From NCBI RefSeq assembly GCF_031769215.1, contig NW_026782299.1, forward strand, positions 1,798,001 to 1,862,000: a DNA stretch of 64,000 nt, read 5' to 3'. Below, one piece after another: positions 11,821-22,022 of this stretch. Each line of letters opens with the position of its first letter. The first letter of the stretch is position 1. This DNA comes from Ylistrum balloti (lineage: Eukaryota). The position numbers and the translations under genes were made by a program. The notes beneath the pieces are model-generated. The model was not told where the DNA came from. It did not search any database and was given only the letters and a program-made list of their open reading frames with translations.

Positions 11821-14800
11821 ATGGGTAAAATTGGGGACATAACTATACAGACGGATGGCGGTAAGGAAGTTTATCGCTCTGGGGAGGAGGTGAAGGGAGT
11901 ATGGCGCGTGCATGTAATTGAGCGCGTTACAGTAAATGACGTCGCTGTCAGTTTGAATGGAGAAACATACGTCAAGTGGACAGAAAGCAGCGTCGAGGCG
12001 AGGGCACCCGACTTAAAATTTATCTCCCGAGAAAAGTACACAAACCAGAAGAAAGCAGTAGGTAAGAATGTTCAAGTATTCATTTGTTAGCATGACGATT
12101 CTGACTTTTATAGGCCTGTCCACACCGTTAGCTGAATTGATAAGTCAAGAAAATGGACACGTGGACATCATCAAATTGCAGGGATAACTTAAATAAGGTT
12201 CTGTAATACAGGAATTATTAAGTTCCTGTGCGATAACACAGTATTTAGTGAGCGATGTACTCGAAATTTTGTAAAAAATTCTAATTCACAAAAATACACA
12301 CTGAGGGCAAAAATCAAGATCAAATGTCAAGGTTTTTGGGTTCAAAGGTCAAGGAATATTACATCTTTTCTCCTATGAACTTTTCATTGACATTGTGAAG
12401 CAAAGTTGATATGAATTAAACAAGTCATCTAACAGACTTAAGGTCAGAGATGAGGACCAGGCGTAGGACCAAAGGTCAAGGTCTAATGTAGGAACTTTTT
12501 TTTCGCTGATGAACATTTTCTTTTGACGTAGTGAAACAACATAGTGAATAATAGTTTGTCAGAATTAAACAAAAATCAAATGACCAAATGTCAAGGTTAC
12601 AGCGTCAAAGAGATCAATGTCAAAGGTCAAGATAAATTTTTGAAGATTTTCATAAAGGAAAGTTTTGTTATGACATTATAAAGCTTCAACTGACCAAAGA
12701 TCAACGTCAACAGGTTTGGTATTTGGATTCAAAGTCATCTGGTCAAAGATGAAACTTTATGTGTTTCTGTCCACTGTGTGATTATCTGACCATTTGTTTG
12801 AAATATGATAAATTGAGCTCTAGGAAATCAACATGTTTCAATGTAAATTCTTAATCATTATAAATATTAATGAATAATTCTCCGAGTGAAAACATATAGT
12901 TTTAGACAGTTTAATTGATATTTTCATATGACAATTTCAATAATAATTACCATGGCATGGATCATAGGGCAACATTTACTCAGTTTGTCAATTTTCTACT
13001 TTTTAACATTTCATTCATAGTTATTCAATATCAATTTAGAACAACAATAGTACTTGGTATGCTGCAAAATCGCAGCTTACAAATGAGTACTGTAAAAGTA
13101 TCCAGGCACTTTTATGATGGAGAATTATACAAATATGTGATACTGGTAATGACATTTCTGTTAGTCCGGCAAATAAGGGGAGGTCAAAAAAAGGAGAGGA
13201 AAACTAGACGAAATAAGTTATCGCATGATGTGCGGTTTTATTGCACAGATGTGCAATTCTATCGTGGTTGATATAAATTTAGAAATTACTTATAGATAAA
13301 TGTAGGATAGAGTTCATCTATATTCAATATTCAATATTTTAGCCAACCATATTTCCTAAACAGCACAAAATGTGCGATCCTACTACACAGTCGTGTGTTA
13401 GATGCCGTATAGTGTGTGTGATGATGTGTGAGGGTGTGAGGGTGTGTGTGTGTACGATGTGCACACTGTGCGTGCATGACATGTGTTTGATGTGTTGTGC
13501 GTTACCAGAACCGTTCTAATTGTGTAACACAAATGTTAGATTTATTCATTATCATGATAATGGCGCTCACTTCCTTTTGATATGTAGTCATTAAACCAAG
13601 CTTTCAAATCTGATGGAACTTAAATTGCAGTGTTTCAAAAAACAACTTTGGAAGCAGGAGTACATGAGTATCCATTCAGCTTTCGAATGCCAACTGATAA
13701 AATGCCATCCTCCTTTGAGGGAAAGCGAGGCTGTACACGTTACTGGCTGTACCTGAAGATTACGCGACCATTGCCATGGCGAGATGTTGTCAGTGATAAG
13801 TGCGTAACCTTTATTGACGATGTGGATATAAATCTACAATATTATGCTGTAAGTAATATTAGTGACATATTCACTGTTATTTCAGACTTGAGTCAATCTT
13901 ACAAGTGACTGAGAATTTGTCGAGATGAATAGGAATATCAGCACGTGAAAAATATACTTAGACTTGTTATTCAAAAGGTGTAATCGAAGTTGGATAGTCC
14001 ATTACTGTAACAAATATGTCAGAGAAGTTTTATTCTGGAACAGTCTTTTAGCCATACATCCTGTCTTTTATGATTTTAATGTTTTTTGAAAGAGGACCTG
14101 TCTATCAATTCACTGACGTGTGTGTGTTTTTGAATTCACTACCCCGATTCTGTCTTTGAGCACTTGACATCGATTAACATCAGATATCTTCTATACTATG
14201 TTCTCTTTTTTATCACATAGTTTCTGTGTTTCAGTGAATATATACTGTGATGATGTAATATTTATGCATATAACTTACCTGTAATATTACCTATTGTGAT
14301 ACTATGTTTTAAAATGATGTCACAGATTGCATCGTGACATACGTAACAAAGAAGACCAGATTTTTTTTGCCAAAATAAGAAAAATGTTGAAGTGGAAGTG
14401 TCCGTTTCCCACGATATTTGTCTAAATATTCGATCAGATGACCATTAAATCTTCTTTAAAATTTATTTTAAATTTTTTTTTACTTTGCCTTAAAAAAATT
14501 AGACTCAGATTTTAAATTTAAACTCCTGGACGATATCTGATGTATGACTATAATTTGCCCTGTAGTTCCAAACAAAATCACATAATTATTCATAGAAATG
14601 TGTTCACGTACACAATTAGGTATATATAATAAAAACTTATAAAGATAATTGTCTTTTAGAAACCACTTACCAAGAAAAAATCAACACATTTGTCAAAGAT
14701 ACTCGGATTTGGTGATGCTGGGGAAGTAACTTTGACAGCGAATGTACACAGAACTGGCTTTTGTGCTGGGGAGGCTATACCCGTAACAGGTTGGTATTTA

Positions 14801-17800
14801 ACGGAAAAGTCAATGGTACTAAATGACTAGTGCTTTAAAGCTATGATAAATAATTGTTTTATTTTGTCCTTCAACAAATGTTATTTCTACTTCCGATTGG
14901 TTGTGGCTCCTTTATATATATAAAATACGAAAATTGCCGTACTTGTGTTTATGGCAATATGTAGTGAACCTCTTTTTTTTTTTTTCTAAAAAGATAAATC
15001 ATTTTGTATCCTTGTATGCTTTTATTGTGTTGCGATAAAATTAATCTTACCTAAAATGTTTTTGTTTTTGCATCTTCACCGATGTTTTTTTTTCTGTGTA
15101 AAGTGGATGCTGTAAACGCTTCCTCGAAAGATTTGGGAAAGCTGAAGGTCTCCTTGGTGCAGAGAGTATCATATAAAGCAAATGGTGATACAGAAACAGA
15201 GGACACCGTGATCTACACCAAAACTGGGTCAGATCCAATCAAACAGGTAAATTGAGCAGAATGTGATATATCAATTGATATATATATATATACACGAAGA
15301 GGGCAAAGAAACACAATTTGAACTTTAAGGTTTAATAAAATGATATTTTAAAGCAATATGCCTTAATGTGAAATGCAATAGTTAACTTCTGTGTTCAGAT
15401 TTCCGGAAAACCAAAGTGACAGCAGGACACTCTGTTCGATATAACGCAAATCGAAGTGCATGGACCTTCAATGCTATGGGAAAACGTGTTGGTACATGTG
15501 CTGTCAACCATTGCGTGTAACGTGCCAAAATTGAGGTGTCAGAGACAACCAATGTGCTGGTGACGTGGGCGTAAATTTGCCTCTCGCAGTCTATTTCTCA
15601 TAGTGTTTGGGTGCATTTTGACGGATTCCTTTTAGGCAATCCAAATGATCCGATCTTGACGTGAGTTGAGATGTAAAACTAATAGACTTGGAATAAATTT
15701 GGGAACTGGAAAGTGAGTAGCGGCCTGCTGCTGAGTGCTACGTCTCATGAACATTGCAAGAGCCCGTCGTCTGTCAAGTTGGGACAGCCGTGACATCTTT
15801 ATAAAAAAAACAATTATTGATTGCAAATGTATTGGCAATAGCGCATTGGTGACGGTCAGAAATTGACACTAGTTTGAATGATAATAAGACTACTTCCATC
15901 TTATTTACTTTCATTATCAAATAAAGACAGCTGTGATATATAAAGAGGTTACACAAGGAGTGTTTGTGGCATTTCTTTCACTCGAGTCAGTTTTTTTCAA
16001 AAGTTACTAAACACACGAGCTTCAGCAAATCTGTTTTTAGTTTTGGAAAATAAATTACTCGACTAAACGAAATACCGAATAACAAATTTGTATGGCCTGT
16101 TTTTGCTAAAATAAAAAAAATATTCTGAAGTTGAATTAACCTGTCCGACTAATTTTCCATGAGTATGTGAAGTGCCCTTTCAGTCAAAGTTAATCAAATC
16201 ATTCTACATGTTATACCAAATATGGTATGATATTTATGTTTTTACAATAATTTTGATGATTCATTGACGCATTGAAAGTAGAATAACACCCACCTGTTGT
16301 AGTAGATATTTCAATATTTCATTATACTCACCTCAAATTTTGAGTCGGGGTTATGAGTTATGGTCCGTAGGCTTGTATAATATATATATTAATGTTATAT
16401 ATAACAAATACTATAGCTCTGCGGTAGTTTTCCTCATCCCTCTAATATATGTAACATTACATATTTTTGTTGTTTCCACTGTTAAAGCCAATTATATCTA
16501 TTTTTTATATTACTTTCTTAGGTAAAGATTGACAGATACCACCAATTCATCATTACAGTCAACTGAAACCTATAGAAAATATATTTAAAATATAGGCATG
16601 TTAAAATGAACCACGAAAAATGTTTCAGAATACGATCAGAAATTAAGATATTCTTTCTGTGATTAACAGAGACATACAAGGAGCTGGAAGGACGAGCTGG
16701 TACATATAGATGCCGTTCCTCCATCTACACGGACAAGAGCCTCTTTCTGTCTAAATGTCTCGTACTTTATCAAGGTCTGTGTGTTGATAGGATTGATTAA
16801 TAAAATTGTCAAGGTTACATTTAAACGATATGTTGTGTCCAAATCAGTATCAACGATATCAAGGTCATTTTAAGTCATGGTCAACATCTGCAGGTAAAGA
16901 CAAAGGTATAATCAATTATGTCGAATTTACCTGAGTAGTAATTACTCTTGATTTTCTCAAGATGACATTACATTCGGTTATTTTTATTTCCTAATAAGTT
17001 AAATTTTGTATATACCATAAGTATTATTTGTGCATAGTCTTTCAAACTCCTAAATTTTCATTTGGTCTCTGTCGATAATATGATAGGGAAATTCAGAGAT
17101 ACTGTCACATAGTTAGTCAGTCACTGGATGATTGGGTATTCCTCTGATAGTGTATGTTTTCTGTTAAAATGTTTTGCCAATCAATATCTTCAAATTTCAA
17201 GTGCTTGACACGGAATAATTAATGGATAAATTTGAATATTTATATTTTCAGGTATACATTGACATTTCCTTCCTGAGTGGTGGTGATCTGGTACTCTGGC
17301 TACCCATCACCATTGGTACTGTACCACAGGGCTACAAAAAAGCAACACCAGCAGGGAGAGCTACTACATCAAACATTCCTGGTGAGTGATATATTTCCAT
17401 TGAAACTGTCTTGTATAGTACATGTAGTTGATCTTTTCGTTTCCTGGTTTCTCATTTTGACTTCGTTTATTGAAGTAGTTGACCTTCCTACAACCTATAA
17501 TTTTCTCTTTTATGATGAATGACCTTTTCTTTGACCTTTTATTTTGACTCTGCCTGTTGATGTTATTGACTGGTGGTTAACCTTTCTCTTGGTGTATCCT
17601 TTGGTGATCCTTGACCTTTCTTTGAAGTAGCAGACCTTGCTTTGGCCTTGCATTTGTTTGGTGGGTGACCTTTTCATTGATTTTTCTTAGCCCATAGGGC
17701 CATCAGATGCTGGGATATTCAAACAACTCTTGATACATCCATTAATCCATCCATCCTTAAACGGTTTTTGTTATCACTATGTTTAGAGAAATACTGGATT

Positions 17801-19075
17801 GATTGTGGTCTCTAGTTGTGCATAACTGATCAGAAAAAAACCCTTTCTTGGATTTTAAGGGTTATGGTTTATCACTTTTGCGTAAGATGTTTTGGATGGA
17901 TTGTTCTCAAATTTCAAAACCTGGTTGTCCGTGGTCCCTAGTTGTGCATAAAAGATCAGGAAAAAAAACCTGACAGATGACCGTCTTGGATTTTAACGGT
18001 TATGGTTTATCACTTTTTCGTAAAATGTGTTTGATGGATTTGTTTCAAACCCTGGTTGTCCGTGGTCCCTAGTTGTACACTACTGATTATGTGGTTTGTC
18101 AGAAAAACTCTAGTCAACAAGTGGGGATATTGAATTTTGATATTTATAGTGTTATTCCTTTTACTGGAAAAGTGCTGAATTGAGCAGTCTCAAATTTTAT
18201 ATGTAGGTTATTCTTATTTGTGCTCTTTTGATTTTAGAACTAATAAGAAAAAACAACATGGATGACAGACTGCCATCTTAGATCTGGCAGTTAAAGATTA
18301 TCATTGTCTTTTTAGTTTACCATACATGGATCATTCAATGGTGGGTACCAATATCCTGCTTGGATTTATTGTGACCTTCGTTTTGACCTTTTATTTTAAA
18401 GTTGTTGATTTTGCTTTGATCTTATTTGTTGCAGTGATTGACCTTTCTAATGCACTGACCCACACCAGGTGTAACAGAGGCTGGGAGAAGTTCAATAGGT
18501 CAACTGACAATGCAATACCAGAATATGTTTCTTATACACCAATGTGTGTCTTTGTACCAAACTACACATACAAACCCCCACCGAAAAAAGCAACCAATAA
18601 GATGAGTGCAGCCGTACAGGTTCGCAGTCCACCTATCTCTGGAACAACAAAAACAGCAAATGCTGCTGCAATATCAAACAATCCAACTCAAGTTCAACCA
18701 TCAGCTTCCACTTCCGGTCCAATAAAATCTACTACCTCTGCTACAAAACCAACAAACAGTCCCATTCCAGTGCAAACATCAGTTACCATTTCTGGTTCGA
18801 CAAAATCTACTGCCTGTGTTGCTAAACCTACAAACAGCCGAACTGTATCGCAAACATCGATTTTGACTCCTGGTCAAGAAAGGAATACAACATCTGCTAC
18901 TCAAGATTCGAGTACGTCAAATGGAGGTCAGAGTCGGCCAGAGCCATCTGCTCCACCTGCTCCTTACGATGAAGCTGAAGGTTACAACATACATGATGAT
19001 GAGGTACTTCTCCCTAGCTATGAAGAACTGTTTGGTCAAGGGGCAGCTGAGGGTAATATTGTGAGTACTGGCTAA
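11821..19075 (+). CDS. ARRDC: Alpha-arrestin (arrestin domain-containing protein); 535 aa if it stops at 19075
   Basis: Exons 11821-12061, 13631-13848, 14660-14789, 15104-15246, 16670-16774, 17252-17381, 18435-19075 (or -19060); all GT-AG with matching phases 1,0,1,0,0,1. Arrestin-N motifs (VY..GE.V.G, GETYVKW, LEAGVHEYPFSF..P..MPSSFEG..G..RY) and arrestin-C motifs (GFCAGEAIPV, LPITIGTVP), then an S/T/P-rich tail with PPAPY and LPSY (PY-type) motifs. The specific paralogue cannot be assigned. Confidence 0.92.
15480..15796 (-). pseudogene. Degenerate Tc1/mariner transposase N-terminal (HTH) fragment in arrestin intron 4
   Basis: MSRLSQLDRRRALAM...AATHFPV...QDRII, then after a stop/frameshift MRNRLREANLRPR...QWLTAH. 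Matches the Tc1 paired-like HTH region; interrupted by stops. Confidence 0.75.
17687..18100. mobile_element. Probable HINE-like repeat with an internal ~85-bp duplication, in arrestin intron 6
   Basis: TTAGCCCATAGGGCC start and (CCAT)n microsatellite; block GGTTATGGTTTATCACTTTT..CCTGGTTGTCCGTGGTCCCTAGTTGT occurs twice (~17860 and ~17998). Confidence 0.4.
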
Positions 19076-19237
19076 TGCATTTTCTTGTTTCTTGTTTTAA
19101 TGATTTGGTAAAAATTGGCAAAATCACATTTGATTTTTTTGATATTGTTATGGGTACTGTGTAAGAGGTAAATTTTGTTGGATCGGAGAACTACACTATA
19201 GCATAACGTATGATGCAGACATGAATCTATGTTTCAG

Positions 19238-22022
19238 GAGGTAGAAGAGACTGCCACAGGCAAGGTGTTTATGTTGATCAGGTTTCAATCTTCTCGGCGC
19301 CAGGAGTTTGTCAATTCAATGAAAAATTACAGTTCTGGGCTTGAAAAGTTCCAAGGGTATCTGTCTGCATTACAGCACAAGGCAAGTAACATTAAAGTGT
19401 CTACATGTTATCCTTTTGTTTTTGAAATGCCGAGACCATATCTATTTACATACATCATCGTGCTACGTCCACCAAGCGTTGTTATGTTTTTAGGTTTGCC
19501 CAAAATCCAATGTGGCCATCATCTTGAAAAATAGATATTAAACAACGTCTGTTCAACTTAGTAATTTGCGGGAATGTTCAGTCAACAAAGTCCAATATCG
19601 CCGCCATGACTGTCATCTTAACACATTTTGAAATTTTGAAACGTCTTTTTGATTTCACTAGCGGCATTGAGCTGAAATTTGTGAGAATGTCATAAAATTA
19701 AAATGAGGAGTGATTTAGCCTTTACTTCTTCATGCTATTTGAGTATTTGAGTGAAGATCTTCAAGTTAAACGAGTTGTGTTTAGATAAATGCAAATTCAG
19801 TTTCATTGTTGGCATTGTGAGTAAAATTTAAAACTTGCCATAAGACTTATGCTGTATATTCAGAAATGTCATGTTCTACTTAAGATCACGACCGTGACCA
19901 GAGGTACATGGAACAAGGCCAGTCTTCTGGCCATCCTCACATTTGAGTGTGCAGACATGGCTCGAGATTGGCTCAAAACTACTCCGGAAATATGTATGGA
20001 GAAGTGGCTGGGAGGTTGCGACATTCTGTTAGTTGAATCATCAGAACCGTTTCAGCAAGGTAAATAATGCATTGTGTCTAACCAATAATAACATCATACA
20101 GTGGTCTATATTCACTCCGTCATATCAAATACCGTCTTGTTAAAAAACTGACCCATCTAATAAGATTATTAGATATCTATACAAACTATATAGAAGAAGG
20201 AATGCCATGTTATCAAATTCTGAATATCTGATTTCTATCACCACTTGTTATGTTACTGAGAACTTAATATGTTAAATGTTGTTTTATGTTCTGCCCAGAT
20301 CACCAAGTTCTTTCTATGTCCAACATTGGCATAACTGTAGAGGACACAAACGAAAACTTGGCACGATATCGGTACCTGCTTAACGAATACCTGAAACCAT
20401 CAAGGTAAAATTATTTTGTTTGTGAAATCAACATAAAACAAGTAAAAACGAAAACAAGACGACCAACCAGATCTTGACCAAGTGTTGTTGAAAGTAAAAG
20501 ACGAACTCAATTATCCTGATAAATATTACTAAAGGTCCTCAACCTATTCAGATATTCCAATTTAAAATTCATAATAACTTTTTAAAGTTTAAATTCATTA
20601 ATCACATATTTATCACATAATTCAATACATTGGGGGCCAAGATAGCTGAGTCAGTAGTATATTCTTTAATTCGTAATTTCAGGGTGCGGATTGGCGGGGT
20701 ATCAGTTGCCTCCTCTAAGGTAAACCATTGCCTGCGTGGAAAGTGGGAAATGGATATTGAGAAAACTATCGTAATTCTGTCTTGGCCGACCATGGATGTC
20801 CTTAGAAAGTATAGGGGCAGTGTGGATCCTGGTAAGTATTCACTTATCCCTATGATAAAACACAGGCTCAAAATGCCATGTTCTCATGTAGAAGTAAAAA
20901 ACAAGACAAAATCTTTTAAAAATCAGCTCTAATCTTGAACACATATATGAGATAAAGGTGCAGTCAATAGTCCAAAATATCAATGACACACATACTCTCA
21001 TTCGTCGTGAGATTTGGGATGATTTAGATTTGAAATATATGCAGAAAAAAAAATCAGATTGGCAATACCAGGTATTAGCCTGCATGTCCATCTTTATAAA
21101 TTCGTGGTATCTATATTTTTTTAAATACTGTAGACTAGAGGGATCTTCCTCATATTTCATGAGAACGTTCTTTTGTTCCATGGTGGCGACAGCTCAAATT
21201 TGATACTGATCAGAAAAAAAAAAATGGCTGACATGTGGCCATCTTGTATTTTACAACGAAAGTTTTTGTTGCTATTTGTTGAGACATTTTGGATGAATCG
21301 GTTTCAAATTTCTTATGTTTATATGGTAACAATTAGTGCCTGCTCAACTCTGAGACTGACAAGAAAAATAAAAATGGCTGAAGGTCGGATGGTCCTCGTT
21401 GATTATGACAATTAGAGTTTAACAACACTATTTTTTAAGAACTATAGTATAAATCTTTTGTGAATTCATATGAAAATTCGAGTTGGTGCCCTTTAAAATC
21501 TGTTTAATTTGTATTTACGTAAACCTGTATCTACATACTTTTCTGTGTACTTTTACCTCCATAGTAAGCAAAATTAATTTTGGGGCAATCAACTTTTGTT
21601 TTCAACATGTTTTCTATCATTTGCAGTTTTTCACTAGCTTATATTGATATGTATTTCCTAATAATACTACAAAGGTATGATGTTCCTGTAGTGTTTCTGT
21701 CATGATCAATAAGAAGAAAAACCCTTATTTTCCAGAAAGACAAATGTGTATGTACATGTAAAACCAAACACTTCTGGTTCAAACAGAGAGATTTTTTCAT
21801 GTAATAACTCTGATAATTTTAATTTTTTTAATTTTTAATTTTATGAAATAGAATGGTAATCAATTATTTTTACACATTAACTTTGTAGAAATCTACCAGG
21901 AAAGTTTAGAGCTGAGAAACAAGGTATTTGAAATTGTGTTGACTGCAGTTGTACAACTTGGTCCGCTACCCAGTCTAGCCAACAGTGAGGAGGAAGATGG
22001 TGGGGAGGTTCAAGCTTCATAA
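19238..22022 (+). CDS. Tandem DUF1330-like (dimeric alpha+beta barrel) coding exons; probably exons 8-12 of the arrestin gene
   Basis: Exons 19238-19381, 19885-20059, 20299-20404, 20683-20831, 21889-22022 (TAA); phases 0,1,2,1; the first intron is GC-AG. Domain 2 (RYRYLL..YLKPSRVRIGGVSVASSKVNHCLRGKWE..KTIVILSWPTMDVLRKY..S.D.EIYQESLELR) fits the recalled DUF1330 pattern GG..A....LEG.W....V..FPS.E.A......EYQ....R. Domain 1 (RGTWNKASLLAILTFECADMARDW) is a more diverged copy. An in-frame ATG at 19229 would allow a separate gene. Confidence 0.75.

Follow-up and report, generated by a model that had tools for sequence, protein, structure and literature searches.

A spliced bivalve gene joins an alpha-arrestin to a tandem DUF1330-like module

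In the 64-kb stretch of the Ylistrum balloti genome analysed here (contig NW_026782299.1, positions 1,798,001 to 1,862,000; hereafter the window), AT-rich animal DNA by its composition, positions 11821-22022 of the forward strand form a single gene of 12 exons, which we rebuilt from its splice sites and reading frames: seven arrestin exons are followed by five exons that encode a DUF1330-like module. The fusion is real, one spliced gene, because matching models are found in five bivalve species, its splice sites recur in three genomes and two intronless contigs cross the junction. As the best explanation of the whole, to which we give a probability of about 0.8, we propose one fused protein of 766 amino acids (aa), a putative adaptor to ubiquitin ligases and to ESCRT, the endosomal sorting complexes required for transport, whose added module may have a binding or regulatory role.

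At the junction, the arrestin frame reads ...GAG GGT AAT ATT/GTGAGT (the slash marks the splice site), with the Ile codon at 19058-19060 and the donor at 19061-19066. Left unspliced, the frame runs through four more codons (VSTG) to a TAA at 19073-19075. TTTCAG ends at 19237, and a phase-0 exon opens at 19238 with GAG GTA GAA GAG (EVEETATGK). Neither AATAAA nor ATTAAA occurs in 19061-19237, the nearest ATTAAA standing at 19391, beyond exon 8. A first-pass annotation, made from the letters of the window, had placed a phase-0 GTGAGT donor at 19061, 15 nt before the end of the stop codon, and a TTTCAG acceptor ending at 19237 before EVEETATGK, had seen no AATAAA in the 177 nt between them, and had spliced the parts into one 2301-nt coding sequence. 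All four statements were borne out in the sequence, the last also by the models, splice sites and contigs named above; our exons add up to the same 2301 nt, an open reading frame (ORF) of 766 aa. The exons and motifs of the gene are as follows.

11821-12061, +, exon 1: start ATG and first half of Arrestin_N (Pfam Arrestin_N, E=3.9e-8; donor TAG/GTAAGA)
13631-13848, +, exon 2: second half of Arrestin_N (Pfam Arrestin_N, E=2.1e-13)
14660-14789, +, exon 3: start of Arrestin_C (weak Arrestin_C match when the exon is scanned alone)
15104-15246, +, exon 4: Arrestin_C (splice sites, frame; identical to the database Y. balloti protein)
16670-16774, +, exon 5: Arrestin_C (splice sites, frame, database Y. 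balloti protein)
17252-17381, +, exon 6: end of Arrestin_C (splice sites, frame, database Y. balloti protein)
18435-19060, +, exon 7: disordered tail rich in serine, threonine and proline (S/T/P-rich), closing at the phase-0 donor (splice sites, frame)
18944-18955, +, PSAP motif of the ESCRT-I/TSG101 late-domain type (Pfam Gag_p6 late-domain match; conservation)
19010-19021, +, LPSY motif of the WW-domain/NEDD4 type (PY), 13 residues before the junction (conservation)
19061-19237, +, intron 7: 177 nt, phase 0, between the arrestin part and the DUF1330-like part (GTGAGT donor, TTTCAG acceptor)
19238-19381, +, exon 8: acidic linker and beta1-alpha1 of DUF1330-like domain 1, ending at a GC donor (frame, splice sites)
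19885-20059, +, exon 9: remainder of DUF1330-like domain 1 (frame; P. maximus exon boundary)
20299-20404, +, exon 10: start of DUF1330-like domain 2 (frame, splice sites)
20683-20831, +, exon 11: core of DUF1330-like domain 2, with the G-x-W strand (frame, splice sites)
21889-22022, +, exon 12: end of domain 2, acidic C-terminus and stop TAA at 22020-22022 (frame, splice sites)

The same junction was found in two other genomes. In Pecten maximus it reads ...AAA ATT/GTGAGT ... GTTTCAG/GAGGTAGAAGAGACT, in phase 0, around an intron of 975 nt (18070-19044 of the genomic sequence L001). In Mytilus edulis, GTA/GTATGT ... TTTCAG/AAT encloses a phase-0 intron of 525 nt in an identical 7+5 exon layout. 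The first-pass annotation had named conservation of the donor in related bivalves as a check; it is found in P. maximus, with a phase-0 equivalent in M. edulis. Intron 7 keeps its position across the three genomes while its length and sequence differ, and the junction follows the PY motif at 14 residues in M. edulis (PPSY) against 13 in scallops. Chance alone would place a GTRAGT on a codon boundary within an ORF's final 20 codons about 0.017 times in the window; as donor, phase and acceptor recur in both species, the junction is therefore not a product of chance. What lies between the splice sites is not kept. The tails that a retained intron would add are mutually unrelated (VSTG and a stop in the window, 15 codons in P. 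maximus, VCI and a stop in M. edulis). An in-frame ATG (MFQ) at 19229, just inside intron 7 upstream of the acceptor, could pass for the start of a separate gene and is likewise unconserved, P. maximus reading CVFQ there. Selection therefore acts on the splice signals and their phase, not on an alternative stop or start.

Transcripts, orthologues and competing gene structures

Two Logan contigs from public read sets (L002 and L004) cross the junction without any intron and are therefore derived from mRNA. In L002 (1251 nt), the frame is open from the very start of the contig and runs through an S/T-rich tail, PSAP, LPSYEELFGQGEAEGKI and then EEEDTSTGKVF..., on to a stop; L004 (2769 nt) carries a complete intronless fused ORF of 750 aa and both untranslated regions. 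Compared between the window and L002, the C-terminal DUF1330-like region has a ratio of non-synonymous to synonymous substitution (dN/dS) of about 0.17, and the 11 linker codons ahead of exon 8's first Met have one of about 0.13; both values are rough, as dS is saturated. By these ratios, the fusion is evidently under purifying selection.

When exon 9 was the sole query, a full HMMER scan over 1.84 billion representatives returned three matches in all. Among them is XP_033755539.1 of P. maximus ("uncharacterized protein LOC117338339"), which is 780 aa long, is matched at residues 591-649 and has the same junction (...AAEGKI, then EVEETSTGK). Word-indexed searches brought up Y. balloti LOC132554899 (766 aa) and the "Arrestin domain-containing protein 3" of Mizuhopecten yessoensis (792 aa). 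With the arrestin part as query, orthologues of fused length were also obtained beyond the scallops, in M. edulis (740 aa), in the unionid Potamilus streckersoni (723 aa) and as the 750-aa Logan ORF. Aligned, the fused orthologues outside scallops share the arrestin core, P(S/T)AP, PPSY, the acidic linker and both C-terminal domains. The species concerned span Pteriomorphia and Heteroconchia (NCBI taxonomy); judged from these protein models, the fusion is present in both major branches of the autobranch bivalves (Pectinida, Mytilida, Unionida). At the level of sequence similarity, the DUF1330-like module is fast-evolving and narrowly distributed. Searches with parts of the window and with the arrestin part returned no stand-alone bivalve protein for either half.

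The nearest gastropod protein, of Gigantopelta aegis, has 448 aa and ends about 25 residues after PPSYEEV. In its genome (L005), the tail is split over two exons and ends about 25 residues past PTAP...PPSY. A tblastn search with the bivalve proteins found no DUF1330-like exons in the 10 kb downstream, a weak negative given how divergent the queries are. Homologues of exons 8 and 9, about 45-50% identical and with the same exon boundaries, were also seen at 1400-2157 of L003, a contig of a Joint Genome Institute metagenome (3300005037; AT-rich eukaryotic DNA of 31% GC) that presumably stems from a mollusc host whose microbiome was sampled. Two stops stand directly before its homologous acceptor and no ATG is usable there; no recognisable arrestin tail lies in the 1.4 kb upstream, which neither extends nor limits the range of the fusion.

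Could predictors have misjoined two neighbouring genes that are independent of each other, one for an arrestin whose frame closes with the TAA at 19075 and one for a tandem DUF1330 protein that starts from the ATG at 19229 or from the Met of VFMLIRF? The stop four codons past the donor and the in-frame ATG ahead of the acceptor would be expected from such an arrangement, stand-alone tandem DUF1330 proteins of about 208 aa are known in flatworms and bacteria, and the gastropod orthologue does end shortly after its PPSY. However, intronless transcripts span the junction; three genomes keep the donor, the acceptor and the phase but not the retained-intron tail or the ATG; the 11 codons upstream of the first Met are constrained; L003 offers no start before its acceptor; and neither half turned up as a bivalve protein of its own. 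We thus consider two genes very improbable, and the idea largely refuted.

A different case is that of a gene with both products, the fused protein and an arrestin-only isoform with VSTG at its end, which would arise if the 177-nt intron were retained or the transcript polyadenylated early; the barrel would then be added optionally and under regulation. In all three genomes, a stop is reached within 3-15 codons of the donor, and, as the gastropod orthologue shows, the arrestin does work when the module is missing. Moreover, the P. maximus intron contains an ATTAAA and an AATAAA 52-64 nt past the donor, just beyond the retained-intron stop. On the other side, the intron in the window is free of poly(A) signals up to the ATTAAA at 19391, the search with the arrestin part returned no arrestin-only bivalve protein, and early stops past a donor are expected by chance in AT-rich introns. 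We hold such a second isoform to be possible, though on balance unlikely.

Family and fold of the C-terminal module

DUF1330 (PF07045, gathering threshold 23 bits) was the only Pfam family matched repeatedly by the C-terminal region, in 5 of 7 orthologues at E<=1 and with a best E of 1.9e-6. Domain 1 of M. edulis scored 24.0 bits, above the cutoff; the other orthologues stayed below it, domain 2 of the scallops narrowly so (22.2 bits in P. maximus, and 19.7 bits). The five downstream exons gave no Pfam match when scanned singly, the fragments being too short, and a profile search of the PDB with a scallop-only alignment gave no match. The NIPSNAP profile (PF07978) matched none of the seven orthologues at E<=1.

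Structure prediction was another check that the first-pass annotation had suggested. With the seven-sequence alignment, AlphaFold2 modelled the C-terminal 235 aa at a predicted local distance difference test score (pLDDT) of 85.2 and a predicted template-modelling score (pTM) of 0.81. In this model, two ferredoxin-like beta-alpha-beta-beta-alpha-beta units pack as one pseudo-dimeric alpha+beta barrel, which is the fold of DUF1330. A first model from a shallow alignment (pLDDT 70.6) had given poor two-domain superpositions and was superseded by the one from the broader alignment; it had matched the DUF1330 structure 3lo3 with a target-normalised template-modelling score of 0.57 for one domain.

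In the ESM Atlas, the closest structure belongs to a eukaryotic, mostly flatworm cluster of proteins of about 208 aa, of which 43% carry DUF1330 (template-modelling score, TM, 0.71/0.79). Next come a mollusc-only 603-aa cluster, NIPSNAP3B, and clusters of bacterial DUF1330, NIPSNAP (TM 0.62-0.63) and Dabb proteins. The protein-language-model neighbours of the module are DUF1330 clusters (0.89; 26 of 100 matches). Among Swiss-Prot models, human NIPSNAP3B and 3A match best (E=2e-9, TM 0.55). The best solved structure is PDB 2pgc, a marine metagenome protein of unknown function, with Z 14.1 over 188 aligned residues (Foldseek E=4.5e-8, TM 0.56/0.63); next, at Z 10-12, come coproheme decarboxylases, chlorite dismutase-like proteins, tandem ABM monooxygenases and sulfur oxygenase reductases.

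From the model, we take the module to be a pseudo-dimer on one chain, which belongs to the dimeric alpha+beta barrel clan and has DUF1330 as its closest family. The first-pass annotation had assigned two DUF1330-like domains to the protein; the label holds at the level of fold and clan and by language-model and structure neighbours, and is borderline in Pfam, where the window protein itself has no match. With PF07045 and 3lo3 the module shares the ferredoxin-like unit with its G-x-W strand motif, and the tandem proteins of flatworms and bacteria are nearest to it both by structure and by features. Classical DUF1330 proteins, in contrast, are single domains of about 95 aa that form homodimers, whereas here two diverged copies lie on one chain, at the C-terminal end of an arrestin. 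The match to 2pgc extends over both domains, though at 12% identity and to a stand-alone protein. The module probably descends from a tandem DUF1330 protein of about 208 aa, which would have been captured at the 3' end of an arrestin gene.

The structural likeness to NIPSNAP proteins suggests another role: instead of sensing a small molecule, the module may offer a docking surface to proteins, for example factors of autophagy or trafficking, or to the surface of an organelle. NIPSNAP3A/3B and Drosophila Nipsnap are, like the module, single-chain tandem alpha+beta barrels of similar size; they are its best named animal structural matches, ahead of all others in Swiss-Prot, and the ESM Atlas holds further NIPSNAP clusters close by. 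However, the module lacks the sequence-level signal of NIPSNAP while DUF1330 recurs, DUF1330 clusters are nearer by features and by structure, NIPSNAPs stand alone, unfused to arrestins, and a common fold does not show a common function. We consider NIPSNAP-like docking rather unlikely.

A tethered enzyme, for example a cofactor-free oxygenase of the ABM type or a haem- or tetrapyrrole-binding barrel, would fit the decarboxylases, dismutase-like proteins, monooxygenases and oxygenase reductases found next to 2pgc. These enzymes, however, are merely the best-populated members of the fold in the PDB; identity to them is 5-13%, and there is no family-level sequence match. Moreover, the invariant positions of the module are mostly aromatic, glycine or core residues (F, W, G, L, Y), with no conserved haem- or metal-ligating His or Cys among them, and look like core positions in the alignment, not like a metal or haem site. 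Enzymatic activity thus seems improbable.

Two further database entries match the barrel module. The first is A0A2T7NH04 (AlphaFold Database clusters), a 705-aa "Arrestin C-terminal-like domain-containing protein" whose residues 447-686 correspond to the module and which, from its accession range, we presume to come from the gastropod Pomacea. The second is the mollusc-only 603-aa cluster of the ESM Atlas (TM 0.73). The arrestin-barrel fusion may extend beyond bivalves.

Adaptor motifs and proposed function

The arrestin half is that of an alpha-arrestin: Arrestin_N is followed by Arrestin_C, both above their Pfam thresholds, with E-values of 1e-22 to 5e-29 and 2e-28 to 6e-35, respectively, in the full-length orthologues (in P. 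maximus, Arrestin_C spans residues 172-302 with E=1.8e-28). Between the arrestin core and the linker lies a disordered, S/T/P-rich tail of about 200 aa. The first-pass annotation had placed PY motifs in it; only one motif, LPSY, is canonical for WW binding, and it belongs to a [LP]PSY motif conserved in 8 of 8 sequences, gastropod included, whereas "PPAPY" is not a PPxY motif and is not conserved. Its order of domains, arrestin-N, arrestin-C, S/T/P-rich tail and two C-terminal domains, was supported; it had overlooked the conserved PSAP. A P[ST]AP late-domain motif like that of ARRDC1 is present in 7 of 7 full-length orthologues, the gastropod again included, and on this conservation the adaptor half therefore looks ARRDC1-like.

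As in ARRDC1, Arrestin_N and Arrestin_C precede a disordered tail in which P(S/T)AP stands beside a PPxY-type motif. When the protein is compared as a whole by language model, its top neighbour is a cluster with the name "arrestin domain-containing protein 1-like", a weak match; orthology to ARRDC1 is putative. The differences are that the scallop protein has a single such motif, LPSY instead of PPSY, and that ARRDC1 ends soon after its motifs whereas the bivalve protein adds about 235 residues predicted to fold as a tandem barrel. Alpha-arrestins in general recruit NEDD4-family ligases through PY motifs. The C-terminal PSAP of human ARRDC1 is bound by TSG101 through its UEV domain and drives the release of microvesicles (review PMC9105457).

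By analogy to ARRDC1 and other alpha-arrestins, the arrestin core would bind membrane cargo or the membrane itself, LPSY would recruit a NEDD4-type HECT ligase via its WW domains and PSAP would recruit ESCRT-I via the TSG101 UEV domain, so that the protein may drive ubiquitin-dependent sorting or budding. The added module could couple the availability of PSAP and PY, or the choice of partner, to a small ligand or a bound protein. The barrel starts about 25 residues past the PY motif, behind a conserved acidic linker; from this placement, control of the motifs or a second binding specificity is therefore the most economical idea. We favour, tentatively and at somewhat less than even odds, a non-catalytic binding or regulatory domain.

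The first-pass annotation had proposed a ubiquitin adaptor with a ligand- or redox-sensing module, a role that is likewise putative. In a more specific and quite doubtful version, the barrel would be a built-in metabolite or redox sensor, masking PSAP and LPSY, about 25-45 residues upstream, in one state and exposing them in the other. If so, a small molecule would directly switch the ubiquitin/ESCRT-dependent removal of membrane proteins, or the budding of vesicles like ARRDC1-mediated microvesicles. Bivalves would then have carried, fixed since their early radiation, a cis-acting equivalent of the pair formed by TXNIP and thioredoxin. That an alpha-arrestin can be coupled to a partner in redox or metabolism has a precedent in TXNIP and thioredoxin, where the partner is a separate protein. 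Dictyostelium arrestin-domain proteins with an added FYVE, C2 or SAM domain are a precedent for an extra globular module; these amoebal additions bind lipids or proteins and have no relation to the alpha+beta barrel clan.

Several points weigh against the explanation as a whole, a fused adaptor with a DUF1330-like module. Pfam DUF1330 is absent from the 235-residue C-terminal region of the window's own protein even at E<=1, and a PDB search with the seven-sequence profile, which ranked 3lo3 first, did so only at E=0.094. By hhalign, the two halves of the module are weakly alike (probability 28%, E=6e-4) and align in register about the G-x-W strand. The support from RNA consists of the two Logan contigs, which may come from species other than Y. 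balloti. An additional arrestin-only isoform, which we rated above as unlikely, could arise by intron retention or intronic polyadenylation, with the P. maximus AATAAA 64 nt into the intron. Finally, the functional part comes from motif and fold, with the ligand, the binding of WW and TSG101 and the regulatory coupling all putative.

The first-pass annotation knew of no description of the architecture. It is already predicted in RefSeq and GenBank, under uncharacterized or generic names such as "uncharacterized protein LOC132554899" and with the arrestin domains alone annotated, but it is undescribed: in the searchable literature, no paper contains both "DUF1330" and "arrestin", the 10 papers with DUF1330 are all incidental bacterial mentions, and those naming arrestin-domain proteins together with scallops are unrelated to the fusion. 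Domain databases miss the architecture because the C-terminal domains sit just below the Pfam threshold. To our knowledge, the animal alpha-arrestins described to date consist of an arrestin core and a disordered, motif-bearing tail. A conserved folded domain right after the ligase- and ESCRT-recruiting motifs would open a new route to the regulation or targeting of these adaptors. DUF1330, on whose function there is essentially no literature, would gain a defined cellular context in which to search for a ligand or partner, and the gastropod orthologue permits a direct comparison of bivalves that have the module with a close relative that lacks it.

Splice-site choice and minor features

All introns of the rebuilt gene are GT-AG, with the exception of the GC-AG intron after exon 8 (AAG/GCAAGT, intron 19382-19884), whose donor is conserved letter for letter in P. 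maximus. Exon 9 also has an in-frame alternative acceptor at 19864, which would give 773 aa; it was dropped, as 19885 fits both the length of the orthologues and the P. maximus exon boundary. The window translation agrees with RefSeq LOC132554899 at 760 of 766 residues, and the six mismatches go back to splice sites chosen differently where exon 8 is joined to exon 9. The RefSeq model bypasses the GC donor in favour of a weak GT donor, 17 nt further downstream, and pairs this with another acceptor; six residues are altered (ASNIKV versus ITTVTR) and the length is unchanged. The homologous P. maximus gene structure favours the joining of 19381 to 19885.

Within intron 1, a CA/TG-rich simple repeat at 13331-13532 gives rise to overlapping His-, Thr- and Cys-rich pseudo-ORFs on both strands; these are low-complexity, non-coding DNA.

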